From positions 62,001 through 126,000 of the forward strand of contig DF236999.1 in NCBI GenBank assembly GCA_000708835.1: DNA of 64,000 nucleotides, written 5' to 3'. Shown piece after piece: positions 4,601 through 24,863 of the stretch. This DNA is from Klebsormidium nitens (lineage: Eukaryota; Plantae; Klebsormidiophyceae). Both the position numbers and the translations under genes were made by a program. Under the pieces are notes generated by a model. The model was not told the DNA's origin. It saw nothing but the letters and a program-made list of their open reading frames with translations, and ran no database searches. Position 1 is the stretch's first letter, and the number at the start of each line of letters is the position of its first letter.

Positions 4601-5683
4601 GGAATTGTCTTCTCCCAGGATCTCTAAAAGCGTTTGGTCGCTCTGAGAGATCGATGCTGGTCAACGAAGTACTCCTCCGCCGACCCATTTTTGCACGGTC
4701 TATCCTGGTCGAGCTCCGAGCTAGTGGTCTCATCCCACGTCACCGCATCCTTTTCCTGACGCGCCTTCTTCTGGTGCAGCCAACGGACGGGCAGAACGCC
4801 CCCGGCTCAGGCCCTCCCCCCCCCGCCCGCTGTCCTTCGAGCGGACTCTCAGCAGGGCCCACCGACCCCCCCGGGACTGAGCGGATTTCCCCCGGTCAAT
4901 GCTTACGCGCAAGCAGCCCCGTCGGCGCCTCCAGCGAGGACGCCCCAGGAGGCGGCGGAACAAAATGTGAGCACACAGAAGGTCTGGCGGTAGAGAACAT
5001 CTATGTGCTGTGGCTTCTGCGTTGTACTACCAATGTGACATTCTTTGCTTAAGCATCGTTTGATGTCGAGCGGGGTTCTCCGGGAGCGGGGGATAACGTG
5101 CGATATTCATGCGCCTGGCTGCCTCCAGACCATCTGGTTTTGTAGTCTGAACGTCGCTCGCAACCCGGCGAACCGCTTGTGTGGGGCCTGATTAGTGGGC
5201 TCCGCTTTGCAGCTGTGTCCGATCTGCTTGACCGAGAGCAAGAACATGGCCTTCCAGTGCGGGCATCAGGTAAGCGCCGGCACGTCCCACGTCACCCGCC
5301 GCTTCCTCATCATCTTGTTGAAGGGCGACACATAGAGTATCGCATGTGGTAAGGCGGGCAAACACCGCTGCGATACTGCGTTTGCCGTTGCTCGCCACTT
5401 GATTTTAAAACCACGAATGGCCAGGGTTTGGGAAAGTTCTCCTGTAAACTGCCCCGGTATCCCCTGAAATTCTGAATCTTGCCAAAGCTTATGACCTGAA
5501 CTTCGTACTGCCACTTGCATGCGAAGTGTCACTCGAGCACAACTTCTAGCTCGGCTGTCTGTTGAATTTGCGGCCTGACGCTTCCCTGTATTTTTGCTGC
5601 AGACCTGTCGCAACTGCGGCGACACCTTGCAGAATTGCCCGATGTGTCGGGAGACCATCCGGACTAGGATACGACTCTTCTAA
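1676..5683 (+). CDS. RGLG: RGLG-type E3 ubiquitin ligase (N-myristoylation motif, copine/vWA domain, C-terminal RING), 9 exons
   Basis: Exons 1676-1825, 2363-2447, 2675-2815, 3077-3190, 3419-3516, 3976-4289, 4780-4966, 5213-5269, 5603-5683, all GT-AG and in frame. Motifs: MGQDSS, ESSNLIVGIDLTKSNEWTG, GPTSFAPIID, QYHILLIIADGQVTRS, SNYPLSIVLVGVGDGPWD, RRFDNFQFV, a Pro-rich linker, and RING CPICLTESKNMAFQCGHQTCRNCGDTLQNCPMCRETIRTRIRLF*. Confidence 0.95.
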
Positions 5684-7109
5684 ACGTACGATGATGGGGG
5701 CCTGTAAATATGAATAGGTGGTCATGCGTTATACAGTCACACGACGTTGCTGACGTTGCTGCGCGGATAGCAATGCTTTTTGGACCGAGCTCGTAAAGAT
5801 GAAGTTCGATAGATCGAGGTGGTGTAGACAGAGAAATCAGGTAGCCAAATCACTACAGGTGACTCCATCAGGCAAAATGCTTGTCAGTCACTGCTCGATA
5901 TATAAAGTGCAAAGTAGAGTCAAGGATAGGGGTCAAGCTATGAGAGTTCGTTGGTCAATCTCAAACAAGTGCTACAGCGTGGGGGGTGAGTGTGAAGCGC
6001 ACCCAAGCCGTTGATATCTCCTTCGTGAGGACTTGGTTGCAACTTCTTCATGCAGAAATTGAGAATTGAGCAACCCGTCCGAGGATTTCTTTACTAGCTA
6101 GACCACATTGGCTCTGTGTATACGTTTACTCGAGTCCGACCACTGAAAGGCCGGTAAGTTGTGGGCCATCATGTAGCAGTAACGCGAGAGAAGTCATGGC
6201 CCATGAGAACGGCCGCCTGGCCTAAGTCATGTCGCGCCGGGAGGTGTCACTCAGTGCAGTCAAATGTGCCAAGATACTTGCAATATTATGCACTGTGCAC
6301 TTATACTTTATCAAGCGAGCGCCGCAAAGTTACTTATCTGATTTTTGATTGCAAGCTGAAGGATCCAAGCTGCAGATGCCGTCATTTATAAGTGACTGCA
6401 ATTATCAGCTTCTAATCTAAAATCAACTCAAAATTGCTTTTAGATTAGAAACGTCCATATCACGATCGAACTAGGTTACGTCAGATCATTCAAATCCTGC
6501 GCGTACTGTAAGCCATCGCGATCAGAGAACACGTACCTAGATCGGACTGCATCATTACGCGGGCCTGGCGCCTGCCGGCCCGCCGTATACGTGTACTTGC
6601 AAGATTCAAGCGTCCAACTTCTCTTCCAATATGCATGTTCAATTATGATCCAACAGGCTTCCACCAATGCGCAGAGCTGAGCTGAGTCGATCGATCCGCC
6701 GCTCGCCCAACTCATGACATGCATGAGTCCAACACGCGATCGAATGCCTGCCGCGTGCCGCCATGAGTATGGGTGCCAAGACATGCAACAATCGCCCCTG
6801 CCACTCTACCGCAGCCCGTCATCATGCCGGATCGAACATGTGGGTGGCGCACATGGCGCGGTTGCAGGTCGGAACCTTCCGACTGATCGACACTGATTAT
6901 CATAGTGGATTGATGGATGTATGCGAGCTTTGATTGTTGCCAAAGCTCGAATTAAACTTCTGAGGGCCACAGGATATCTGTTTTGATCAAGAGAGCCTCT
7001 CAGTAAACCCTACTTCAGAGTATGACTACTTTCGAAATATGGACTACGTCGATCTTCTTAAAGTCTTGACTCCTGTTACGCCTGAGCAAAATACTGACCA
7101 CTAAAACAA

Positions 7110-10100
7110 TCAAAAAACTAACGCTACCAGGCCAGCAATGACCACGAAGATACTGGCACTTGCAATGAAGCTTTTTGTCGCGCCAGATGCCGGTGCCGCT
7201 GGCGGCGGGGCTACCTGCTGATTCGTTCCGTTGCGAACAGGTCCGGTCGTCAAAAATCCAGCGGGTGATGGTGCCGGGGCCAGCGCAAGAAGCGAGCTGG
7301 CAATCTGAGGGTCGACGCCCAGGGTGAGATTCTTGAACGGGTTGGCGACTAGGGATGGAGGACATGAGCTGTCGGCGGAGCACGTGAAGAAGTTGTTGTC
7401 GTACCTGCCGTGGCGAGAAAGCGGAAGAAATTATCTGAACTGGGACCGACAATGGATAAGCGCCGCAATCACGAGACGTGCACGAGACTGAACGTACCAG
7501 ATCTTGACCGAGGCGGATAACTGCTTTAGTGCGCGGTGAAGAAACAACTTCGAATCCTTTCCGTGTCTTTAACGAGCGCGAAGTCTTTGAACCCTACGCG
7601 CACTTCACACGAATGTCTGACATAAACCATTCAGAGTACTTTGAGGATCGGAGCTCTTTTCAACTGACTCTGAACTGTGCAGGGACTTGTGACACGTACC
7701 AGAGGTGGAGATCAGGGTATCTGACACGATCGAACAAACAGCTGTTTGTGAGGTTCCCCGTCAGCCGATTGTTCGAGATGTCGAGAGCCTTCATGTTCTT
7801 GAGCCCGTTGCATATAGTGCTCGGAACCTCTCCCGTGAAGTTGTTGTATCCCAAGCCTCTGCAAGAAGCACCGCTTTCATTGTGTTAGACTCTCATCTCT
7901 CTTCTTTAAAAGCCGCACACGGACAACTCGAACCGCTCTTCTGAAGTCGATTCTTTGGAAACGAAGCTTATGTAACACGCGGAAATTGGTTCCTGAACTT
8001 CTGAAAGCGAAGCATCGGGAAACGAATGATGAGAAAGTTTCATGTTTCTTCCCATGTCCTGAGAAGTGTGTGCTCAAGCGCAACTCCTTTGCTCTAGGTA
8101 ACTGAATTAGAAAGCTGGGGTTTTTAAGGAACAGTACGTACAGTATCTCCAATCTCGAAAGGTTTCCCAGCTCGAGGGGCAATGTGCCTGACAGCTGATT
8201 GTTGTCCAGGTTGAGGAAAGTCAGGTCGAGAGTGGTGAGGCAGACTGGTAAAGGCCCCCCAAACGAGTTGTCACTCAGATCCCTGAGAAATAGAGATCGA
8301 ACGGAGACTGCATTTAGAACGAAATTGGATCTGGGGCAATCAAAAGCTTCTGGCGGCTTACTCGGGTTTGATCTGACCAGAGATCGAGAGCAGCAAACTG
8401 ACGACGAAGTCCAGAGTCGGTCTCCTTTGAAAATGGAAAAACTTCCCAGTCATCGGATAGCAATTTATGAAGCTGCAAGGTCGGACCGTGTGATTGCAGG
8501 GGCTAGAAAAAATTCTGAGATGTAGAACTCACAACTGTTGGAGATTCGATCCATTACATCCCGTTGGAAGGTCTCCAGAAAGCCGGTTTATCCCTAAGTC
8601 GCTGCATCGAAAGACACTTCGTTTTTGAGATCGATCAAAAAGACTCTAATAAATCATGTAAATGCCAAAGCGCAAATAAGTATCTCTGAGCAGTGACAAT
8701 AAGAGACGCTTCGTCTAAGAGGGCACACTATTAACTAACCTGTCAGCTAAAGTTTGACTGATGACCACTCACAGCGCTCTGATGGACGGGCCCTGGAATA
8801 TGGAGAGTGGCACGCTGCCGGTGAACGAATTCCCGTTCAGTGAGATCTCCTGAAGCGCGGTCATATTCTTGAAGAAGCTGGGGACTGCGCCTCCAAGCTG
8901 ATTGCCTCCGAGATTGCTGTAAGGACGAAGGGAAACGTTTTGAACTTTTCCCTTTTGACTTTCCGCTTTTGCAGTACCATTTGATATGAGAGTGTACAAT
9001 ACCAGAACTTAGTTTCTCTGCGCAAGCCGACCTCAGAGAATGATTCCGAGTACAATCCTATTGAAGCATAACGACATGCTCTGATGAAACCTGTGCACGA
9101 GACTTCTGAGCCGAGAGAAGAGTGGAAACGTCATTTCCCCGCCCGATTTTTGTAAGTCGACAGATGGATCAGGTAATCACTGCGTGTTCGCCGCGGTTGT
9201 CAAAACTTACATGCTTTGAAGATTCCTCATGTTGGTGAAGGAAGTGGGCACGGGTCCAGTGAGCTTGTTGTTTGAGAGATCGAGATGAAGCAGTCTATTT
9301 AGATATGCGAGCTGGTCCGGGACTGGGCCTGAAAGCTTGTTCTGGCTGAGATCCAAGTGCTGCAGGGCCTGAAGGTTGCTCAGAGAAGCGGGAATCCCGA
9401 TCGGACTAGTGGTATTGAGGCTTCCGTTCTCATCTACCGCCCCAAGAGAGTTCTGGCTAAGGTCCAAAAGCACCAAACTGTTGAGCTTGCTGAGATCCGG
9501 AATCGACCCCAATAGACGGTTGTTCTGCAGTTGCCTGTCGGAAAGAGGTGGGAGACGTTGTGATGAAACGCTTCGAAGGTGATAATCCAAAGGGACAAAC
9601 AATGACAAATTGTCTTACTGAAAGCAGAAATATTCTTTCTAATTCACTGAAATACGTGCCCTCGCAGCTAGCGATAGTGAATTAGGCAGAGCCTGCTCCA
9701 TAAGAACGGGATGGAGAAAGATTCTAGATCATGTCACGTGTCGGCTTTAATTCTCGTATTTCGTACTACTTTCAGTGATGCATCTCAACCGAGATACTTA
9801 CAGACTTGTGACCTTTGGGCCAATGTCAGCGATGGTCGCTGGGATGGGACCAGTGAGCAGATTGATTTGCAGTTGGCTGCAGAAAGGCAGAGGAAGAATC
9901 TGAGGAACAATCTGAATGCAGATCAGCACAGTTGGTTCGAAGGGGTCAAAAGGCGCTGTGTTTCAAAAGTGCGATTGAACAAAGATCTTGTCTGAAAATG
10001 TCGAAGTTTCCAGGGCAAACTTTCAAGACCTTCAGAAGCTTATTTCAAATCTGAAATAGCTCGAGATCAACTTACACGTCACGCAACGTCTTCATGTTGC

Positions 10101-13573: not shown

Positions 13574-14008
13574 TTCGGAAAATAGACTTCTGAATTCTCC
13601 CGGTCTTGCTAAGAAGTGCAACTTCGATCGTTATTGACGAACACTCTCTGCAGAAGATTTGAAGGCCAGGCGGAAGTCGACCGGTCTTGCTCTGCTCGGT
13701 TGATCAGCCGTCCAAAAGAAGACTGTCCTGCTCTCGCGCTACTCCTGAGAGCCCAAGCTTTCAAGCTTCGTCTATGCTGGCTGCATGTACGTACTTGCTG
13801 TGAGTCCTACCTAACAGTGTCTGCCTACTCCAGTCGCTCAGCAAGCATTCGGATTATGCAAAGCGACTCGCTTGCGCATCTTCGAGCGGAGTTTAGAGGC
13901 GTAGTCAGCTGCCTTCAAGCTGAAGTTGGCACTGAAAGGCCGCATGACTCGTCGCGGCCGCACGGGGGCCGCACTGAGCGGCCGGGCGCTTCGGGCCCGC
14001 GGTCACAG

Positions 14009-14020
14009 TTCGCGCGCCAA
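14009..14020. promoter_or_regulatory. Double-sided E2F-type site upstream of RECQL4
   Basis: TTCGCGCGCCAA reads as an E2F-like site on both strands (TTGGCGCG on the minus strand). It lies in a GC-rich stretch about 380 bp upstream of the RECQL4 ATG. Confidence 0.5.
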
Positions 14021-14395
14021 TTCCTCTACGGAATTGACAGTGACTTCCCTAGCCTTCGGCACCTCACACTTCAATGGGGAGTTCGTCAAGTTCTCAGGTC
14101 AAGGTAGAGGACTTTTGTAATCAAACTCGCCACTGTTCAGAACCCTTGAACTTAAGTTGAAGTGGCAAGGGCCAATTCAAGTGGCAATTGTACCAGGACT
14201 CTCGATCATCAGGGACTCTGGGTAGGAACGAATACGGTAGTGGTGCACGGAGTACCTATGAGAAGTTATGGTGGAAGCAGTTGCACCAATCACCTGCCTG
14301 CGCGTCTAGATCTTCCCCACAATCGTTGCAAACGGATTGTCAATTCATGGGATATCAATGAAACAAAGGAGGCGAGGTTCACAAATCACCCATAA

Positions 14396-17300
14396 ATGGA
14401 CCTTAGCATGCGACCTGGGCTGTCGTCCGAAGCTTTGCTTGCAGTTATCAAGCGAAAACTGGTGGTCTGGGAGTCTCAGTTCCTCGCAGAGCATGGCCGA
14501 GAACCTGGGAAGTTGGACGCATATGCAGATGAGAAAATGGGTGAGCATTGAAAATCTTTATTGACCTGCCAAGCAACTGTATGTTTTGCTATCTTTGCAT
14601 GATGCGTCATCTGATTTGAGCTGAAAATGAGCCACCAGGTTTGCAAGCCCCTTGCTGTATGCGTTGTGGAAAGCCTATCCTCCAGTCCAGGTCATTGACT
14701 TGAGACCATTGGATAAATCATTGCAGCGGCGCTCTATCGGAAGTACGCAATGCTGAAAATGGCCGTCAACAGGAATGGAGCACTGCCGAGGGGGAAGCCA
14801 GATTCAGTAAGCAGCTTGATGACTTATGTTTGTGGCATGCTGGCTGCTTCTATTGCATGGAGAGGCGTCATCCGGCGGGGCAAGCTTCTCGTCTTGACGC
14901 AACAGCGATTGATCAAAAAACAAATCTGGTCTGGGTATGCCCTGGCCACAATACTGCATCACTTGAGCATGCTTAGCAAGTGCGCTTCACAACATTCTTA
15001 CCGGCGCACAGATTAAGAGGAAGAGGGCAAGGTTTTCCAGATACTGACTGTTTCAATGTTTCCTCCAGGCCTCTCATCATCTGGCAACAAAGGGGGCTAG
15101 TGCAGCCACCCAGCGTTGTCTCCTTGAATCAAAAGGCAAGAGGCAGTTTGAAGTTGATTCCCAGGTCAACAAAAAGCACTTGGCAAGGGCACCGTTGAAG
15201 GACAGGGCCAATCTGCAGAACGACAGCATGCAGGGGAACCTCCAACGGACAAAGCTGCCCAAGCCGAAGCAAAAAGGTGGGCTCTTAGGGGATGTTTTGG
15301 GGAATGGGAACAACCTTGCCAGCGCACGTGGAGGACACTCTTTTAGCAGATGGTTACCTTCTGATGGGGAGAGGGGAGAAGAGCGGTCCAATGTGTCCAC
15401 AGTCATCCCGGTTGAAGCTGACAACGCATTTGCTGAAGAAGGGCTTTCAGCAAACCCCAGAAACCCCTCGCACAATCAAGACCGGCTGAGCCGGGACCCA
15501 AACAGCCCGCAGCGATCACAGAAAGGAGCTAGCAGTATGATAGCTGACAGCAAGGTCAAGTTACCCTTTCAGCCGGCAGCGCAGGGTCAAGGGCGCAGTT
15601 CTGGGTCATACGCTGGTGCGGGGTCCTTTTCTAAGAAGCATGGCTCATTCACTGGGTTTGCCAAGCTGCAACAGGTGAACGGACTACTTGCAGAACAAGC
15701 CCCAGAGTTGACAGGATCTGGCCCTGAGCAAGAAGCAAGGGCACCTAGTAGCATGGATACAGTGCCCCCGTCTGAACGCCTCAGAACAGACAACAGCTGC
15801 CCACGAAGCAACGCGGTGGCACAAACTCACTTAGTAGGCATCGCAGCCTGTGAGTCGGAGATAGACAACGACCAGGGAGTCCAGCGGACAGAAGAGTGTT
15901 TCGCAGAGTCGATCGGGCAGGAGCGGCAAGCAGGGGAAGGAGCGGGCCAGGCGAACCAGGGGCAAACTGCTGGGGGGCATGCCGAGCTCCCTCAATTCAG
16001 CAAGCTAGATGGAAGGCGTCAAGAGCCAGGCAGTGCAGAGCCAGTACCGAGTGGCCAACAAGAAGCTGCAGAAGGAGGAACAGGGGCCGCGGTTAGTCGA
16101 CCGATAGAAGCAGACTTGGGCGCGAGCTTAGGCAGCAGCCTGCAGGCCGGCGGCGCCATCGAGGCCAGGCTCTTGAGATTGACGGTGGTCCAATTGAAGC
16201 AGCAGCTGGAAGGGCGGGGCCTCGTGTGCAGGGGCAAGAAGCAAGAGTTGGTGGCACGCCTAGTTGGGGCCATCTTGGAAGAGGGCGACCTGAGCAACTG
16301 GGAGGAAAGCCTGGGGGTGCTCGATGCCGGGGGCTGGGGTAACCCTTCTCTGGTGTTGAAGCGGGGAGCAAAGAGTGCAACAGCGAGGGGAGAATCTGGT
16401 CGGGGTGAGAAGCACGGGGCTGGCGCCGTTGCGGAGGGCAGTCAAGAGCAATGTGTGCAAGATGGAAAGAGTGCGGCAAGTAAGGCTTCGACAAAACGGA
16501 AAGCGGGAGCGAAACAGAAACGGGCAAAAGGGGCCCTTGCTGAAGGTGCAACCTCTGAGTCCAGCGACGAAGACGTGCAGATCTTCGATGGGGCTTCAAA
16601 GAGGAGTCTGCGGAGCAAATCTGAAAAGGGGGAGAAAGAAACCGCTGGCCAGGACGAAGATGCCCCGGAGACGGCCTCAGAGAAGAGCTTTGACTCAAAC
16701 GATCTCAGCGACTCGGATGACGACTACAAGCCACCGAAAGAAGGGGAGGCGGTGGCGGCAGAAGCAGAGGCTGCCCAGGTTGCGAGTGAGGGAGAAGCAG
16801 ATTCAGGGGACCCGGAACGGCAGCCTCGAGGGAAGCGGAAGAGAGCTGCTGGTGAGGAAAGCAGTCAGAAGAGGAGCAAGGCGAAAAAGGTGGCGGCCGC
16901 AGGGGAGCCAGTAAGCAGGTCGAAGGGGACGAAACGAAGTAGGACGGTGTCGGGGCCTGGTGAAGAGATGGAACGTGGGGGGACGAAGAGGGCAGCGGCC
17001 GCCAAGCGGAGGGCTGAGCTGCAAGCTGTGGGGTGGGGAGGGCCCGTTCGCACCAGCCGGGCTACTGGCAAGGCATCAGGCAACTTCTCGAGCGCGGGGC
17101 TGCCGGTGCGCGACAACTTTGTGCGGCAGACCATCAACGGCAGGGGGGGCGGGAGGAAGCGGTTCACAAACGGGGGGCGGTCTTCCTTCAGGAGTAAGAG
17201 CGGAACCCGGCCGTTCAAACGGAACTGGGGCAAGTCGCGGAGGGGCGGAAAGACGGGGTCGAGACCAACGGGCAGGGGGGCTGCTCCTGGGAGTGAAGAG

Positions 17301-20300
17301 CCTGGTGAGGGGGGGACGGGGGAGGGGTGGGGTGCTGAGGAGCAGCCGGGCCTCTTTAAGAACGAAGGCTGGCTGCCCGCAAGTGCAGGGTCCGCAGTCC
17401 AGACGCCGGAAACTGAGTCCCTGGGGGAGCCTTCGATACCTTGTCAGCTGGTTGACCAAGCAGAGCCACCGCCGGCCAGCGTCAGTAACTGTCCGAATGA
17501 TGCTGAGACGGAGGCAGCGATGCAGGCGGCCCGGGGGGATCCCTCCGAGAGCAACCTGCTGATCGTTCTCCAGCGGCTGTTTAGTTTCGACGACTTCCGG
17601 GAGGGCCAGCTGGCGGCCATTCAGCGGGTGCTGGCGCAGCGGTCGACCATGCTGGTGCTGCCGACAGGGGCGGGGAAGTCGCTCTGCTACCAGGTGGGAA
17701 CTCATCTTTCGTCTCTTTGTGTATCGAAACCAATCTGATGTGTAGTTTCTGCTTTGCTGAGGCGCACAAGTGCGCAGAAGAGGCGCAAAAGCCCACTCAG
17801 AAGACGACTGTATTCTCAGATTGCCCTGTTGCGAAAACGAGTATTATGCGTGCGGGTCAATACTATCCTTGACACTCAAGAGCAGACCGAACACAGTCGT
17901 CTTAATGCGATTTTATCTCATCGCTTCCGAGGGATTAACACCGTCTTCTGGAAGGGCGGCGCCTGACCCTCACTTTCCGGTGATGCCAGCTGCCCGCACT
18001 GCTGCTGCCGTCCCTGACCCTGGTCATCTCCCCGCTGGTAGCGCTCATGACGGACCAGCTGCAACACCTGCCTCCCTGCCTGCCCGGGGCGCTCATCAGC
18101 AGTGCGCAGGTGAGAAAAACACACCCTGCGAGGAAAGCTAACTAGCAGAAATACAATTTGCGAAAATCTTCTTCGACCTGAACCGGAATGTGACATGATG
18201 GGACCTCGTACTGGAGGAGTGCTGACCCTTGCCTCACGCCAATTGAATAGAAACATTTTGCAAATGGTGACTGGTTACGGGACCCGGATTTGCGTGCTCC
18301 ATGGACTGTCTCCGTAAACGCGTGTTCTCCGTAACCCTTTTTTGAGTTCCGTTGAAAAGAGTCAGCAAAAGTGACATTATTCTCCTTGGCAGGCCCCTTG
18401 GGAGAGCGCCAGCGTCATCGCAAGGCTGCAAGCCGGCGAGCTAAAGGCAAGCCTCCCCCCCGTCTTTCTGTCCGCCTACCCGCTCTTGCTTTGTGTCGAC
18501 ATGTCAGCGTCATGTGTTCGTTGGTCGCCGCTTTTCTTCTCTCGGTTCCTTCATAATGTCCATTTTCGAGCCTGGTTCTCATCCTTTAATAGTTTAGCAA
18601 GCGCCTCTTCTGTCGCGCTCCTCGTTGCTGGTCCCCTTCTCGCGGCCCTATTTTTTTCCCGACCACCTCTGCTGAAACCGGTCGATCGTGCAGGTGCTGT
18701 TCATTTCTCCGGAGCGGCTCTTCAGCGAGACGTTCCTTGCGGTCATGGCCAGCCTGCCGCCCGTGTCCCTGGCCGTCGTTGACGAGGCGCACTGCGTCTC
18801 AGAGTGGTAAGCAGCCAACGGGACCGTTCCATGTCTTTCGCCAGATTGTTTTTTCAATGATGCAACTCAGATACACGCCTTCGAGGAGCCGATTTTTCGT
18901 GACTGTCAGTACAACATCGAAAGGTGCATGTGTGCCCCGACCGCATTCTAAAAGGAAAAGCAGCGGAGAATGGATGAGCGGTCAAAAAAGGAGATCTCGA
19001 CTCAGACATGAAAACCCCCGCGATCTGCAATCCGCCGTTTGACACGTGCTGTTGACACGCCTCGTACAACCAGCAGCAAGCCGCTTCTCAAAGCCGATCG
19101 CACGACCCATCGATTATCCGGGAAAGAAGGTTGCCTGCGACAACGAAGTTTTGCTTGCCAAAGCAATCCAAAGCAGCCAACGTTATTCCTCCACTTCAAA
19201 AGGCCCCACCAACCGCTCCATTGCAGGTCCCACAACTTCCGCCCCTCTTACCACCGCCTCGGCTCCGTCCTCCGCTCCCGCCTGCGCGTGCAGTGCGTCC
19301 TGGCCATGACTGCCACCGCCACCCCCAAGACGGAGGCCGCGGTCGCGGCCGCGCTCGCGCTCCCCGATGACGCCATCATCCGGTCGGCGCGAGTGCGGGA
19401 GAACCTCCGCCTGTCGGTCAGCAAGGAGGCCAACAAGTGAGCGCGCGCGTTTCTGAGCTGAAGCATGATGTTTGTATCGCTTGATGCTTTTTAGGGAAAA
19501 CTTAAACATTCGTTCCGGGAGTTCTTTCTAGCCAACGATCGAACGCTTGCTCATATGTCCGGGCTAAGCATGCCGAGTGGTCATGCGCTTTCCCCTGCTT
19601 TAAGAGACGCCAATTCCAGAAGCACGAAGTCTCCCGTCCTGCTCAGCTTGTGAACGACCGTTGAAGGACCTTCCTATCTTTCGGCTAGGCAAGCCCGGAC
19701 TTCCTTGCATGAAACGCAGCCGTTGATTCCGATTGGTCCTTTCGTTCCGTCGATTTCAGGATGTATGCCCTGGCCGCCATGCTCAAGACGGGGCCCTGTG
19801 CAAAAGTCAAGAGCGTCATCGTCTACTGCATCTTCCAGGTAAGCAGAGAGCCCCGAAGGCCGCGTAGTTTCTCTGACGTTTTCTCTGACACAGTAGAACA
19901 TTCTCAGACAGCTCTTTGTGGACGAGGACCATATTGCCAGGTGCGTATGCCAGTAGTAGTTTAATTTAAAGGTTTCGGAACAGTCGTAGGACGACCTCTA
20001 TTTCTGAAAGCGAAACCCGATCTCCGTCTAAAATGCTGGTAACCTCTCCTTTCAGGCACAGACGGATCAAGTGGCCGCTTACTTGGAAGCCAACGGGATC
20101 TCTGCTAAGGTGGGTCCTCCGCCGGGCTTGCAGATTGTCTTTTCCACAAGTTGCCTTTTCGAGCTTGACAGCGCTCCTCATCGACGCTTGCAACGAAATT
20201 TGTATCATTCGAGCACATTCTGTAGGTTCTAGAAGGTCAAGAGTTGCAAGGTGGATTCGCTCGTCCTGCACTTACAATGAGGCGACTGCTTGACGCCCGC

Positions 20301-23300
20301 CCCTGACTTCAGCTGCTGACGTCAGTACGGCCGCTCTCGTGCAGAGCTACCATAGCGGCAAGCACGGGGACGAGCGCGCGCGTATCCAGCAGCGCTTCTG
20401 TGCCAACAAGCTGCGAGTGGTGAGCGAGTCGCCGAGGGCCTAACTTTGCTTCGTCAAAACTGGTTTGCAATGCATTATTGCAGTGGCGCAAGCCCTTCCT
20501 TCTTCTGACTAATGGTGTGAGGGGCATGAGCCCTTTACAAGCAGCGACTGTCGGATCGAGTCGAAGAGCAGTTCAAAGAGCTCGGAGGAAGCCTCGCGTA
20601 ATTTTAAAGTGTCCGAAGCCTTTCCTTCAAACGTCGTAGGAATCTATGAAGAGGTTGCGATCTCGATGCCACTATCTGTCAACACCTGGAAGGTTTCTTT
20701 TGAAACCTTCGCTTAAAATTCCTGCTTTTCGTCAGCGTGAAGTCAGAGAGCCATACGCAAAACCTCAACGTTACATGCAGTCTGAACCTCAGACAACAAG
20801 AATACGGGCGTCATTAATGCTTTGACGCGTGATCGTGCGGAGGCAGACGCGTCATCTTCCCCCATTACCGCACACTTCGCTTTGAAACCGCCACTCTCAA
20901 GTTTCGTGTCCTCTACCCAATTCAACCTGTAAGGTGGCCCTGAACGGGACGCATACCCTATCCCCTGCAGGTGGTGGCGACAGTGGCTTTTGGCATGGGC
21001 CTTGACAAGAGCGACGTGGGGGCTGTGATCCATTACAACATGCCGCGCAGCCTCGAGCACTACGTGCAGGTAAGGCCACCTGCCCTCACCGCCGCTCGTC
21101 GCATCTGACTGACTGTTTAGAGCATTGTTTTGAGGAAAGTGGATCCTGGAAAGCTCCAAAATAGTCCTACTCTGAGGGACTGGTTCTCAGAGGCGAGCGA
21201 CTCGTCATAGCCCGCGTGCGGCAGCTTCTTTGCCTCCTGTTATCTCGCCTTTGTCAGCGTCGTCAACGCTGAAGGAGGTACTGCCCAGGACTTTCGAGCA
21301 AATTATGTAGGGTCAGCAGTCAGGCCTCCCTGAGCAGGTCCGCCATAGTCTTTGATGGTTCTCCGGCCTGTTTTCAGAGAATCATCATTGACAGCCAACT
21401 CTTCGGTACAGCGGCTGATTCACCGGTACATCATGCAAGCGGAATACCCCAAAAGCCAAGCGTTCTGTGTGCCCGTCAGCGCTCATACATACCAAGCGAT
21501 TGCAGGAGATCGGGCGGGCCGGCCGCGACGGCTCCCTTGCGCACTGCCACCTGTTCCTGGACGACGCGGACTACATCAAGCTGCGCAGCCTGGCCCACAG
21601 GTACGTGTTTCGTCCTTTTGAGCTGCTCCTTCCGATGCTCGAGCGGAACCCAGTTTCCAATTCCGTTTCCGTGCGAGTTCTCACTACTTTCACACCTTAT
21701 GTATCACCTTGCACACCTTCGGTACTTTACTTGCTGCTGGAAGAATCAGACTCCATTCTTACGGGAGAGGAGAGCATAACAGTGAGTCCAAACGGAGGTC
21801 TGCTTAGTTGGAAGAATATCCGGCACTCCCGTTGGATCGAGCTAGCGTTGCGCGCGGGCATGAACAAGGCTTTTGTGTTGTGCGCGAGCATGACCAAGGA
21901 TCTTTCTGCTTGTGCAGCGACGGCTGCGACGCCAACTCCGTGCTGCGCTTCCTGTCCAAGGTCTTTGTCAGCGACGGCTCGGAGGTGCGCGCGGACCCCG
22001 CGGGGATGGAGTGCCGGGCGGTGGAAATCGAGGCGACGGCCACGGAGCTAGACCTGAAAGAGGAGGTGAGAGGACTTTTGATTTTGGCTCACGACACCCC
22101 GCAGCTCACGGATTGATAAGGCTTATACTAGAGCTGAGCGGGGGTTGCCTGTTCGACTTGATTGGGCACGCTGATTACTTCTGGGGCAAAAGGGTTCGCT
22201 CGCGGAAGTGAAGTGATGCACTCACAAAGATCAGTTTAATGCCGAGGTTCCCTTGCAAGGGTCCGAATATTTCAGTGGAGGTTCGGCCAAATGCGCCGAA
22301 AACATCCTCCCTGCGCAAATTAAAGTGTAATGCCGTGACAGCCAAGCGGTGGCGACATCGAAAGGTAGCAGTGGGAGATGTTGGAACGGAAAGGAAGCAT
22401 AAGATGTCAACCAAGTTGCCACAGTGGTTGCGGCTGTCCCAGAAGAGCCTGGTTGCGGCTGTCTCTTGGCGGCGACCTCGGAGCCGCCATCCCTGCCTTT
22501 CTGTCGCCAAACAAGAAGCACGCGAGCGCAGGTGATGGCGACCATCCTGTCCGCGCTGGAGGTGGGCGACGCCCAGTACGTGCGCGTGCTGTCCCAGCTG
22601 AGCGCCACGTGTACGGTCACCTTTCACGGCCGCAGCCCCGCCGCGCTGGCCGAGGCGCACCCGCTCGCGGCCGCCATCCTGCGCCTGTGCCCGCAGCCCA
22701 AGCAGGGCCGATTCACATTCGATGTGCCCAGCCTCGCCAGCGCGCTGAGGGAACCGTTGGCGACGGTGCAGCGGGAGCTCCAACGACTGCAGGTGCGCAG
22801 CGAGAGGCTCGTATCTCTCAGCTGTTGTCAGGAAATGCGAACATGTGGTTTGAGGTCTGAGCATGTGAGGGGTATTGGGAAGCTGCTGTGCACGATTTGC
22901 GAGCGCAAGGGTCTACGCAGGGTGGTGATTCTGTAACTCACAGAGGGTTCTTGGCTCGCTTGCTCGCGACGCGAAAGGGATGCTGACGGACATGATGACG
23001 TCCTTTCTACTCTGACGAGTCCGCACGCTGACTGCCGCCGTCTGCTTATGCACACTCAAGTGCCGCATATCTCGTCGCAATCCTGTCAAACCCGGTGATA
23101 TTAACACACTCTCAGCAGTGTCAGACGTGTCCTCGATGGCAAGCAGACTGAGACTTGATGCTACTTTTGGGGCAGTCTGCGCGGGAGATTCAGTACGAGG
23201 TGAAGGACCCCGCGTTCTGCTTCTCCGTGCTGCGGCAGCCCGAGGACCTCGCGGCGCTCAGCCGGGACATCGCGCAGCGGCTCGACGAGGTGGAGCAGTG

Positions 23301-24863
23301 CAAGGTGAGCGGCAGACCGCCAACCGCGCTTTAACCCGAAACCCTAGAATCACCCCGCTCGCTTGTCAATGCTGACGTTCAGGGAGTGGACACAGCGTTA
23401 CAGTCAATGTTTACAGACACGCGTATGGGCGGGAGGTGGTTTGTACCGGCCGCATGCGCCTGAACGACAGGAGAAAGGGGCTTGACGTTACCGGTCTTCG
23501 GACCAGTCGTCTCGGTGGCCAGGGGACGAAAGCAACTCAAGGACTGTACACGGTCTGTTATGGCCCGGCGAAGTGTCTTCGGCAACACGTCTTAAAAACA
23601 AGTATACCGCCCACTTTTGAGGAAGACACACGTCAAGTCTTTTGCAGCTACAGCAGTAGGGCGTCTTTCTATCCAGCGTTGGGCTCTCAGTGACATCAGC
23701 AGGGCCTCTTCTCTATCTTAGAGTCGAGTCCCAGGCTTTTTGCAGCGACTTGAAAGGTGCGTCTTCTTTTTCCCAGGTCGCCAAATTGGACGCCATGTAC
23801 AGCGCCGCGGCCGCGGCCGCGGCCGCGAACCTCCAAACCTCCCCCAGCAGCTCGGCGGAAGATGCCAACGCCCTGCTTCACCGGCGCATTGCTGAGAATT
23901 TTTCGACGGGAGAGGACGCGGACGCGCCACTGCCAGGGGTGGTCAAGCGCGCGAGCACCTTCCTCAAAGCGGATATCAAGGCAAGCACCGAATCTTTGCA
24001 CGGCTAGAAGAAAACGATTGGGAGTGGTTGCTCGGCGCTTGCTGGGGATGCAGGGCGACTCGCTTGCGCAAAGCAGACCAAAGGAAGACCTTTGGGTCCC
24101 CAGCGACCTTAGGTGTGTGAAAACTTTTGACGTCAAAAGCAGTTATCGCGGAACTGGGCTCCTTATTTAGGCAGACCACGAAGCCCATGCCTTTGACGCC
24201 TCGCCCCGACATTAAGCCCATGCCTTTGACGCCTCCCCTCGACTCTGAAGGAAAGGTGCGAGAGTCTGCCGTTTCCCTCTGTCAATGAATGCACCGTCTG
24301 TCGTCGTAGAGCAATTTTAGAAAGTACAAGCTCCTCGGAGGTGCAGGCTGATTGGAAACTAGTTTCACTCCGCAGGTCTTTCTGAACGGGAACAAGCACG
24401 CTCCGCTGACGGGCCGTGCCGTCGCCCGCATCTTCCACGGGCTGTGGAGTCCGGCGTTTCCGTACCAGGACTGGTGCAAGAACCACTTCTGGTCAGTGCT
24501 CTGGCTGCTGCTACAAGGTTTCTGAAGGTCACGAAGAAACACGAGGAGCTCATCAAAGGCCTGCGGATTCAATCACCGACGAGGGCTGGACCTCGAAGTC
24601 TTTATGCGCGCTCAGCAATGGTGTGCATTCATTAGGAGACGTGACTTCCGCAACGGAAGTACGCAGTAGTATCGGAAACATAATTCCTGTCGCTAAAGCT
24701 GCGGTGGTCCACTCCTGAGAGGGTTATCATCCAAATGTGCGTCTGCTGGCTTCATTTGAGCGCTTCGATTTTGTCGTGCAGGGGTCGGTATGCGGACGTC
24801 AACTTCCACGACATTCGGAGGATCGCCACAGCAGCGCTAGTAGAAGCGAAGTGCAACAGATAG
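14396..24863 (+). CDS. RECQL4: RECQL4-type (plant RecQ5-like) ATP-dependent DNA helicase with Sld2-like N-terminus and SAP domain, about 1562 aa, 18 exons
   Basis: Exons 14396-14540, 14727-14806, 15069-17693, 17990-18109, 18393-18446, 18694-18806, 19227-19436, 19760-19838, 20056-20109, 20345-20419, 20971-21069, 21506-21600, 21918-22065, 22532-22792, 23176-23304, 23777-23980, 24376-24491, 24782-24863; total 4689 nt. RecQ motifs [79 protein letters not shown]4-specific motifs [11 protein letters not shown] and [17 protein letters not shown]...FWGRY. Confidence 0.93.
24181..24243 (+). repeat. Short intronic direct repeat (33-bp period)
   Basis: AAGCCCATGCCTTTGACGCCTC at 24181-24202 and again at 24214-24235, inside RECQL4 intron 16. 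Confidence 0.8.

Follow-up and report, generated by a model that had tools for sequence, protein, structure and literature searches.

The window analysed here, a 64,000-nt stretch of the Klebsormidium nitens contig DF236999.1, contains on its forward strand a gene for a RecQ4-type helicase, the parts of which are listed in Table 1. Exon mapping yields an 18-exon coding sequence of 1548 aa that runs from the ATG at 14396 to a stop codon ending at 24863. An in-frame TAA at 14393–14395 lies immediately 5' of this ATG. GTGAGC follows the last base of exon 1 at 14540, exon 2 is bordered by TTGCAG and GTAAGC, and TCCAG precedes the start of exon 3. The first three exons share one frame with zero stops: 48 and 26 residues from the two small exons, joined by a split codon for Ala, lead directly into the third. 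The 5' UTR holds two upstream ATGs, at 14347 and 14358, which open a 4-codon uORF and an out-of-frame ORF overlapping the main start, so that initiation at 14396 requires leaky scanning or reinitiation; neither ATG is conserved in the contig of a related Klebsormidium described below. Elsewhere in the window, GC content dips sharply between 58001 and 60000 (0.35, against about 0.5 in the remainder), and Tandem Repeats Finder reported nothing in this AT-rich stretch at 58–60 kb.

Table 1. Features of the RECQL4-type gene, in positions of the window.
Feature	Position	Strand	Remarks
5' UTR, RECQL4-type gene	14168..14395	+	contigs of three runs begin at 14168-14170
Coding exon 1	14396..14540	+	start codon and first two thirds of region I (residues 1-48 plus one base)
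Intron 1	14541..14726	+	GT..AG, 186 nt
Coding exon 2	14727..14806	+	last helix of region I, then short linker
Intron 2	14807..15068	+	GT..AG, 262 nt
Coding exon 3	15069..17693	+	875 codons; long low-complexity linker, RecQ motifs 0 and I at end
SAP domain in linker	16176..16271	+	PF02037, E 1e-6, 28.6 bits, cut-off 23.9
Sld2 homology region II-like motif	17115..17165	+	regex plus alignment context
Fifteen later coding exons: RecQ4-type helicase core and RecQ4-specific C-terminal region	17990..24863	+	exon map from the 1420-aa public protein

The first-pass annotation had proposed that the two small exons are spliced in frame to the large one. We found this stretch in 20 sequencing runs from 7 studies, all tagged merely "RNA?", and aligned the Logan contigs of four runs, from four studies, to 13900–19899. 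In these contigs, which come from runs only guessed to be RNA and are blind to abundance, strand, transcript ends and translation, the intron between 14540 and 14727 is skipped in all four runs and that between 14806 and 15069 in three of the four. One contig of 2662 nt spans 14168–14539, 14726–14806 and 15069–17276. Five more introns downstream are skipped as well, with junctions visible up to 19760, and all of the skipped stretches have the GT..AG or GC..AG ends of an intron. Because the contigs leave out only canonical introns, we treat these assemblies as transcript-derived for practical purposes. A GC-AG intron at 18447–18693 (AAG, then GCAAGC) is skipped in contigs of all four runs, indicating that non-canonical GC donors are used in this gene. 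Both proposed junctions are therefore present in the presumed RNA contigs and carry canonical GT..AG borders, and the peptide predicted from them is the exact product of the splice.

The large exon is 100% identical to a 1420-aa NCBI protein of K. nitens named 'Helicase conserved C-terminal domain containing protein'. Pfam assigns SAP, DEAD and Helicase_C domains to this public model, and PF11719 is absent from it. The model's first residue, Met 15228, corresponds to position 129 of the spliced protein. Translation truly begins with the ATG at 14396, and the annotated methionine lies 128 residues too late. Near the other end, the public model splices from a GT donor at 23939, leaving out 14 residues encoded by 23939–23980. 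These residues align perfectly with FLKADIKVFL of Physcomitrium and FLRADIK of Marchantia, and use of a GC donor at 23981 (GCAAGC) keeps the frame and gives a protein of 1562 aa. Judging from this alignment, 14 further residues are probably missing near the C-terminus of the public model. We conclude that K. nitens RECQL4 is an 18-exon gene encoding about 1548–1562 residues.

What the added N-terminus encodes is indicated by its family match. Searched against Pfam, exon 1 alone has PF11719 (Drc1-Sld2) as its sole match, at 15.6 bits, and exon 2 alone has none. The spliced 75 residues again match only PF11719, now at 33.6 bits (E 4.6e-8; gathering score 28), with residues 18–62 of the spliced protein aligned to profile positions 4–48. 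That joining the exons doubles the score provides independent support for the splice. Among solved chains, 2KMU, the N-terminal domain of human RECQL4, is the only significant match to the 75 residues (E 1.6e-4, 25.5 bits, 2KMU residues 6–53), and a four-row profile composed of two Marchantia N-termini and the two window exons matches residues 2–53 of the 56 in 2KMU with an E of 8.4e-12. Counted from the ATG at 14396, the domain starts at about residue 15, and its place at the extreme N-terminus is shared by Marchantia, a fern and a protein from run SRR21021234 discussed below; K. nitens and Marchantia paleacea also have an MDLS start in common. By these alignments, residues about 15–62 are Sld2/RECQL4 homology region I, as the earlier reading of the motif had it, and the HMM search proposed as a check gives a match above the curated cut-off. 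Region I is a homeodomain-like three-helix domain in human RECQL4, and the K. nitens fold is predicted to be the same.

A short, helical, charged peptide might resemble region I by chance: the domain comprises only about 45 residues, and the single-sequence score against 2KMU is modest. However, no other Pfam family competes with PF11719, the domain occupies the same extreme N-terminal place in the same orthologous helicase in animals, liverworts and a fern, and the profile, besides its strong match to 2KMU, recovers bona fide Sld2 proteins. We consider a chance resemblance to be of negligible probability and retain the assignment to region I.

Conservation between species points the same way for the exons themselves. 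A 70-kb contig from a related Klebsormidium (run SRR23617307) carries a large exon 82% identical to that of K. nitens, and a called ORF of 66 aa represents its exon 1. Between the two, exon 1 is 88% and exon 2 89% identical, compared with 55% for the 5' UTR, 57% for intron 1 and 52%, with gaps counted, for intron 2. The related contig keeps all splice signals, and its frame is intact despite a 3-nt insertion. By this comparison, purifying selection between the Klebsormidium species has kept region I.

These data also bear on whether the public model could be right after all, with translation starting at Met 15228 and exons 1 and 2 merely serving as 5' UTR exons or an upstream ORF. The NCBI protein does begin there, and the leader does contain upstream ATGs. 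Yet such a leader would have to maintain 128 in-frame codons without a stop over two splices, to double its PF11719 score only once spliced, and to be conserved at 88% where UTR sequence reaches about 55%. Moreover, the liverwort orthologues open with an N-terminus of the same MDLS/MDPP type that contains the domain. We regard a start at Met 15228 as very improbable and take the protein to begin at 14396.

Between region I and the region II/helicase part lies a disordered linker of roughly 690 residues that includes the SAP domain. The Marchantia and Ceratopteris orthologues have a SAP domain between region I and region II as well (residues 422–453 and 378–410, respectively); none was found in the SRR21021234 protein or in the precomputed Pfam lists of angiosperm models. 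Animal RECQL4 does not share the SAP domain. At residue 630 of the 1420-aa public protein, a motif search, the sole method applied here, locates a region II-like motif that aligns with NFVKLNLNG of plant RECQ5 and with the C-terminal NFRRLKL of yeast Sld2. Of the motifs compared, that of K. nitens diverges most.

The helicase part finds its best solved match in human RECQL4 (5LST; 331.8 bits, E 6.7e-98), ahead of E. coli RecQ at 269 bits and of RECQL5, BLM, WRN and RECQ1 at 226 bits or less. A Zn knuckle upstream of the helicase has been described for metazoan RecQ4 and is not universal to the subfamily; in translated exon 3, the segment from the region II motif to helicase motif 0 is free of Cys clusters. 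The first 950 residues contain just two S/T-P sites, one of which fits S-P-x-R, and the K. nitens protein lacks the DSDSDGSHISATPP motif that land plants conserve. Given so few sites and the missing motif, CDK-dependent TopBP1 binding may differ in K. nitens.

Homologues of the protein are the plant 'Q-like 5' and 'Q4' proteins. In a gene tree of RecQ4-type sequences only, with other RecQ subfamilies not used as outgroups, K. nitens is followed by bryophytes, the fern, the SRR21021234 protein and then angiosperms. The SRR21021234 protein (P0160; 1250 aa, from transcript-sized contigs) is sister to the angiosperm clade with support of 98/95, falls outside it with 100/100 and branches further in than the fern; its position in the tree suggests that it is probably from a gymnosperm. 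It carries PF11719 at residues 23–90. Because 5LST is the best solved match and the order of the gene tree mirrors plant species relationships, the assignment of the gene as an orthologue of RECQL4, the plant RECQ5 type, is borne out. Our main reading, a claim about structure and family, is that the K. nitens protein is a RECQL4 orthologue of the type represented by plant RECQ5 and DIV20, and that it carries region I. We give this a probability of roughly 0.85.

We then mapped where else region I occurs. A word-based search with the Marchantia N-terminus (region 1–80) returned only two Marchantia proteins, and an exhaustive profile search was used instead. It returned 780 proteins at E<=0.001, and the account below covers the best 150, most of them without a name. 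Named matches with the domain at about residue 1 include Marchantia polymorpha, M. paleacea, Calypogeia fissa and the fern Ceratopteris richardii ('helicase Q4'), as well as Riccia fluitans and Spirogloea muscicola (models of 392 and 438 aa). Outside plants, the domain stands at the same position in Capsaspora, a chytrid and yeast Sld2 proteins. The profile thus picks up yeast proteins annotated as Sld2 as well as long proteins of the RecQ4 type in which the domain starts at residue 1.

In 82 of these 150 best matches (of 780) we also observed 2–12 tandem region I-like copies, of the pattern L..WK..F....GR.PT..DI..DP....LY.EY..LK. These proteins reach about 2000 aa and come from Logan and JGI assemblies. 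One such gene, at 5294–8980, lies on a gene-dense, eukaryote-like metagenome contig of 28 kb, adjoining histone deacetylase, CH_2 and RRM genes.

Angiosperms present a different picture. When 120 RECQ5-type proteins were scanned with a local N-terminal HMM, the domain was detected in Marchantia only, and none of the roughly 100 angiosperm models among them carried region I. The first-pass annotation had suggested that angiosperm RecQ5-type orthologues lack this N-terminus, and these models agree. It had also allowed that the N-terminus might prove routine in land plants; this applies in part, as the domain is present in Marchantia, Calypogeia, Riccia and Ceratopteris and absent from angiosperms. 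Most angiosperm models start with M-[DE]-SDSDSDGSHISATPP, grasses having a variant; in liverworts, the fern and the SRR21021234 protein, region I is followed, 50–100 residues on, by this same motif. Angiosperm models that extend upstream of the usual methionine contain no Sld2-like sequence. This, together with the conserved start motif, makes the loss of region I in angiosperms look real rather than an annotation gap.

We also looked for a stand-alone angiosperm protein that might carry region I separately, and none was recognisable among the short single-domain matches inspected in the best 150 of 780. Those matches were yeast Sld2, yeast-Sld2-like proteins with a region II end, vertebrate RECQL4 fragments, and Klebsormidium, Riccia and Spirogloea models.

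Several further observations concern the segment downstream of region I. From liverworts through to angiosperms, the proteins share an acidic, Ser-rich motif that ends in SHISATPP(R/K), a full CDK-type site, and most angiosperm RECQ5 models begin directly with this motif. It lies at about residue 154 in P0014, 103 in P0158 and 117 in the SRR21021234 protein. Neither K. nitens nor its close relative has it; a more distant relative represented in JGI data (P0003) carries the similar SEGIPATPTSK. Some models are atypical in their composition. That of Physcomitrium patens (1213 aa) has neither region I nor the SATPP motif, and the Riccia and Spirogloea models consist of the Sld2 part with no helicase, the latter with a region II motif at residue 314. 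These three models could be truncated or split, or could reflect real fission or loss events.

Part of this was anticipated in the literature. Gaggioli et al. (2014; PMC3926958) described the Sld2-RecQ fusion as ancestral and present in the plant lineage, reported that Arabidopsis has region II without region I, and noted that region I is functionally important in yeast. Ikui et al. (2020; bioRxiv 10.1101/2020.04.26.061929) identified DIV20 of Chlamydomonas as an orthologue of RecQL4 that has Sld2 homology at its N-terminus and is essential for replication, its ts alleles blocking this process; the replication-defective mutations adjoin the helicase and are not in the Sld2 region. The same work nominated AT1G27880 as the Arabidopsis equivalent of DIV20. 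Plants are not mentioned in PMC4757822. The proposal that this gene preserves the ancestral Sld2-RecQ fusion in the green lineage is thus correct as biology but was not new, having been published since 2014.

Published work on yeast Sld2, on vertebrate RECQL4 and on Chlamydomonas DIV20, together with studies in C. elegans and Xenopus, suggests how the K. nitens protein might work. By analogy, the three-helix domain at the N-terminus would act, jointly with the linker and region II, in origin firing through TopBP1/Dpb11-linked assembly and activation of CMG, and the helicase part would serve replication and repair. We lean toward a role of the N-terminal module in replication initiation, with distinctly less confidence than we have in the family assignment. 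Alternatively, region I could be authentic but no longer engaged in initiation, persisting as a DNA- or protein-binding appendage for repair or telomere roles of the helicase. The scarcity of S/T-P sites and the loss of the land-plant SATPP motif would fit such an appendage, as would the fact that angiosperms do without region I entirely and the location of the DIV20 mutations. Nevertheless, region I is under purifying selection between Klebsormidium species, has been retained from algae to ferns and matters functionally in yeast, and no other Sld2-like K. nitens protein appears among the best 150 of the 780 profile matches. We therefore judge the appendage unlikely and continue to favor a role in initiation.

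Taken as a whole, the distribution can be read as a piece-by-piece dismantling of the Sld2 module within streptophytes, a reading that we hold to be slightly better than an even bet in all its parts jointly. The land-plant ancestor would have had region I, SAP, the acidic SHISATPP CDK-type motif and region II. The SATPP motif would have been lost in the K. nitens lineage, and region I would have been lost only on the angiosperm stem, after the SRR21021234 lineage split off. If this is true, angiosperm proteins start exactly at the SATPP motif, and flowering plants either rewired origin firing to proceed without the homeodomain-like domain or moved its function to another protein.

The finding is mainly a gene-model correction, the ancestral fusion and the Arabidopsis absence having been published earlier. 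Its value lies in correcting the public K. nitens model by 128 residues at the N-terminus and probably by 14 near the C-terminus, and in adding a streptophyte alga to the evidence on a replication firing factor that has received little study in plants. The layout of region I, SAP, region II and helicase is now shown in a streptophyte alga, although the added value is modest. The K. nitens, liverwort, fern and SRR21021234 sequences narrow the loss of region I down to the stem of the angiosperms, which is useful for asking how CMG assembly is triggered in angiosperms.

Compared with known systems, the K. nitens protein shares with yeast Sld2 and S. pombe Drc1 (PF11719) an N-terminal region I and a region II-like motif. 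The yeast proteins, however, stand alone at about 350–450 aa with no helicase, and their essential CDK site, Thr84, has no evident counterpart in K. nitens. With human and Xenopus RECQL4 it has in common a region I that aligns over the whole 2KMU domain, an NFVRLN-type region II and a RecQ4-type helicase; it differs in having no Zn knuckle, a much longer linker with SAP and very few S/T-P sites. Arabidopsis and other angiosperm RECQ5 proteins of the AT1G27880 type have an orthologous helicase and share region II and the C-terminal region, but region I is missing, in agreement with Gaggioli et al. (2014; PMC3926958). Chlamydomonas reinhardtii DIV20 (Cre15.g634701), likened here from its published description rather than its sequence, is likewise a green-lineage RecQ4-type helicase with N-terminal Sld2 homology; it belongs to a chlorophyte, whereas K. 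nitens is a streptophyte alga whose protein adds a SAP domain in the linker. In layout it resembles the 'ATP-dependent DNA helicase Q4' proteins of Marchantia, Calypogeia and Ceratopteris, which have the same order of region I, SAP, region II and helicase, the SAP being taken from Marchantia and Ceratopteris and not Calypogeia, and the region II motif being unmatched in Ceratopteris. In the helicase part, these land plants are 48–68% identical to Marchantia, and Calypogeia is about 50% identical to K. nitens. Unlike K. nitens, all three carry SHISATPP after region I, and their N-termini are already part of the public models.
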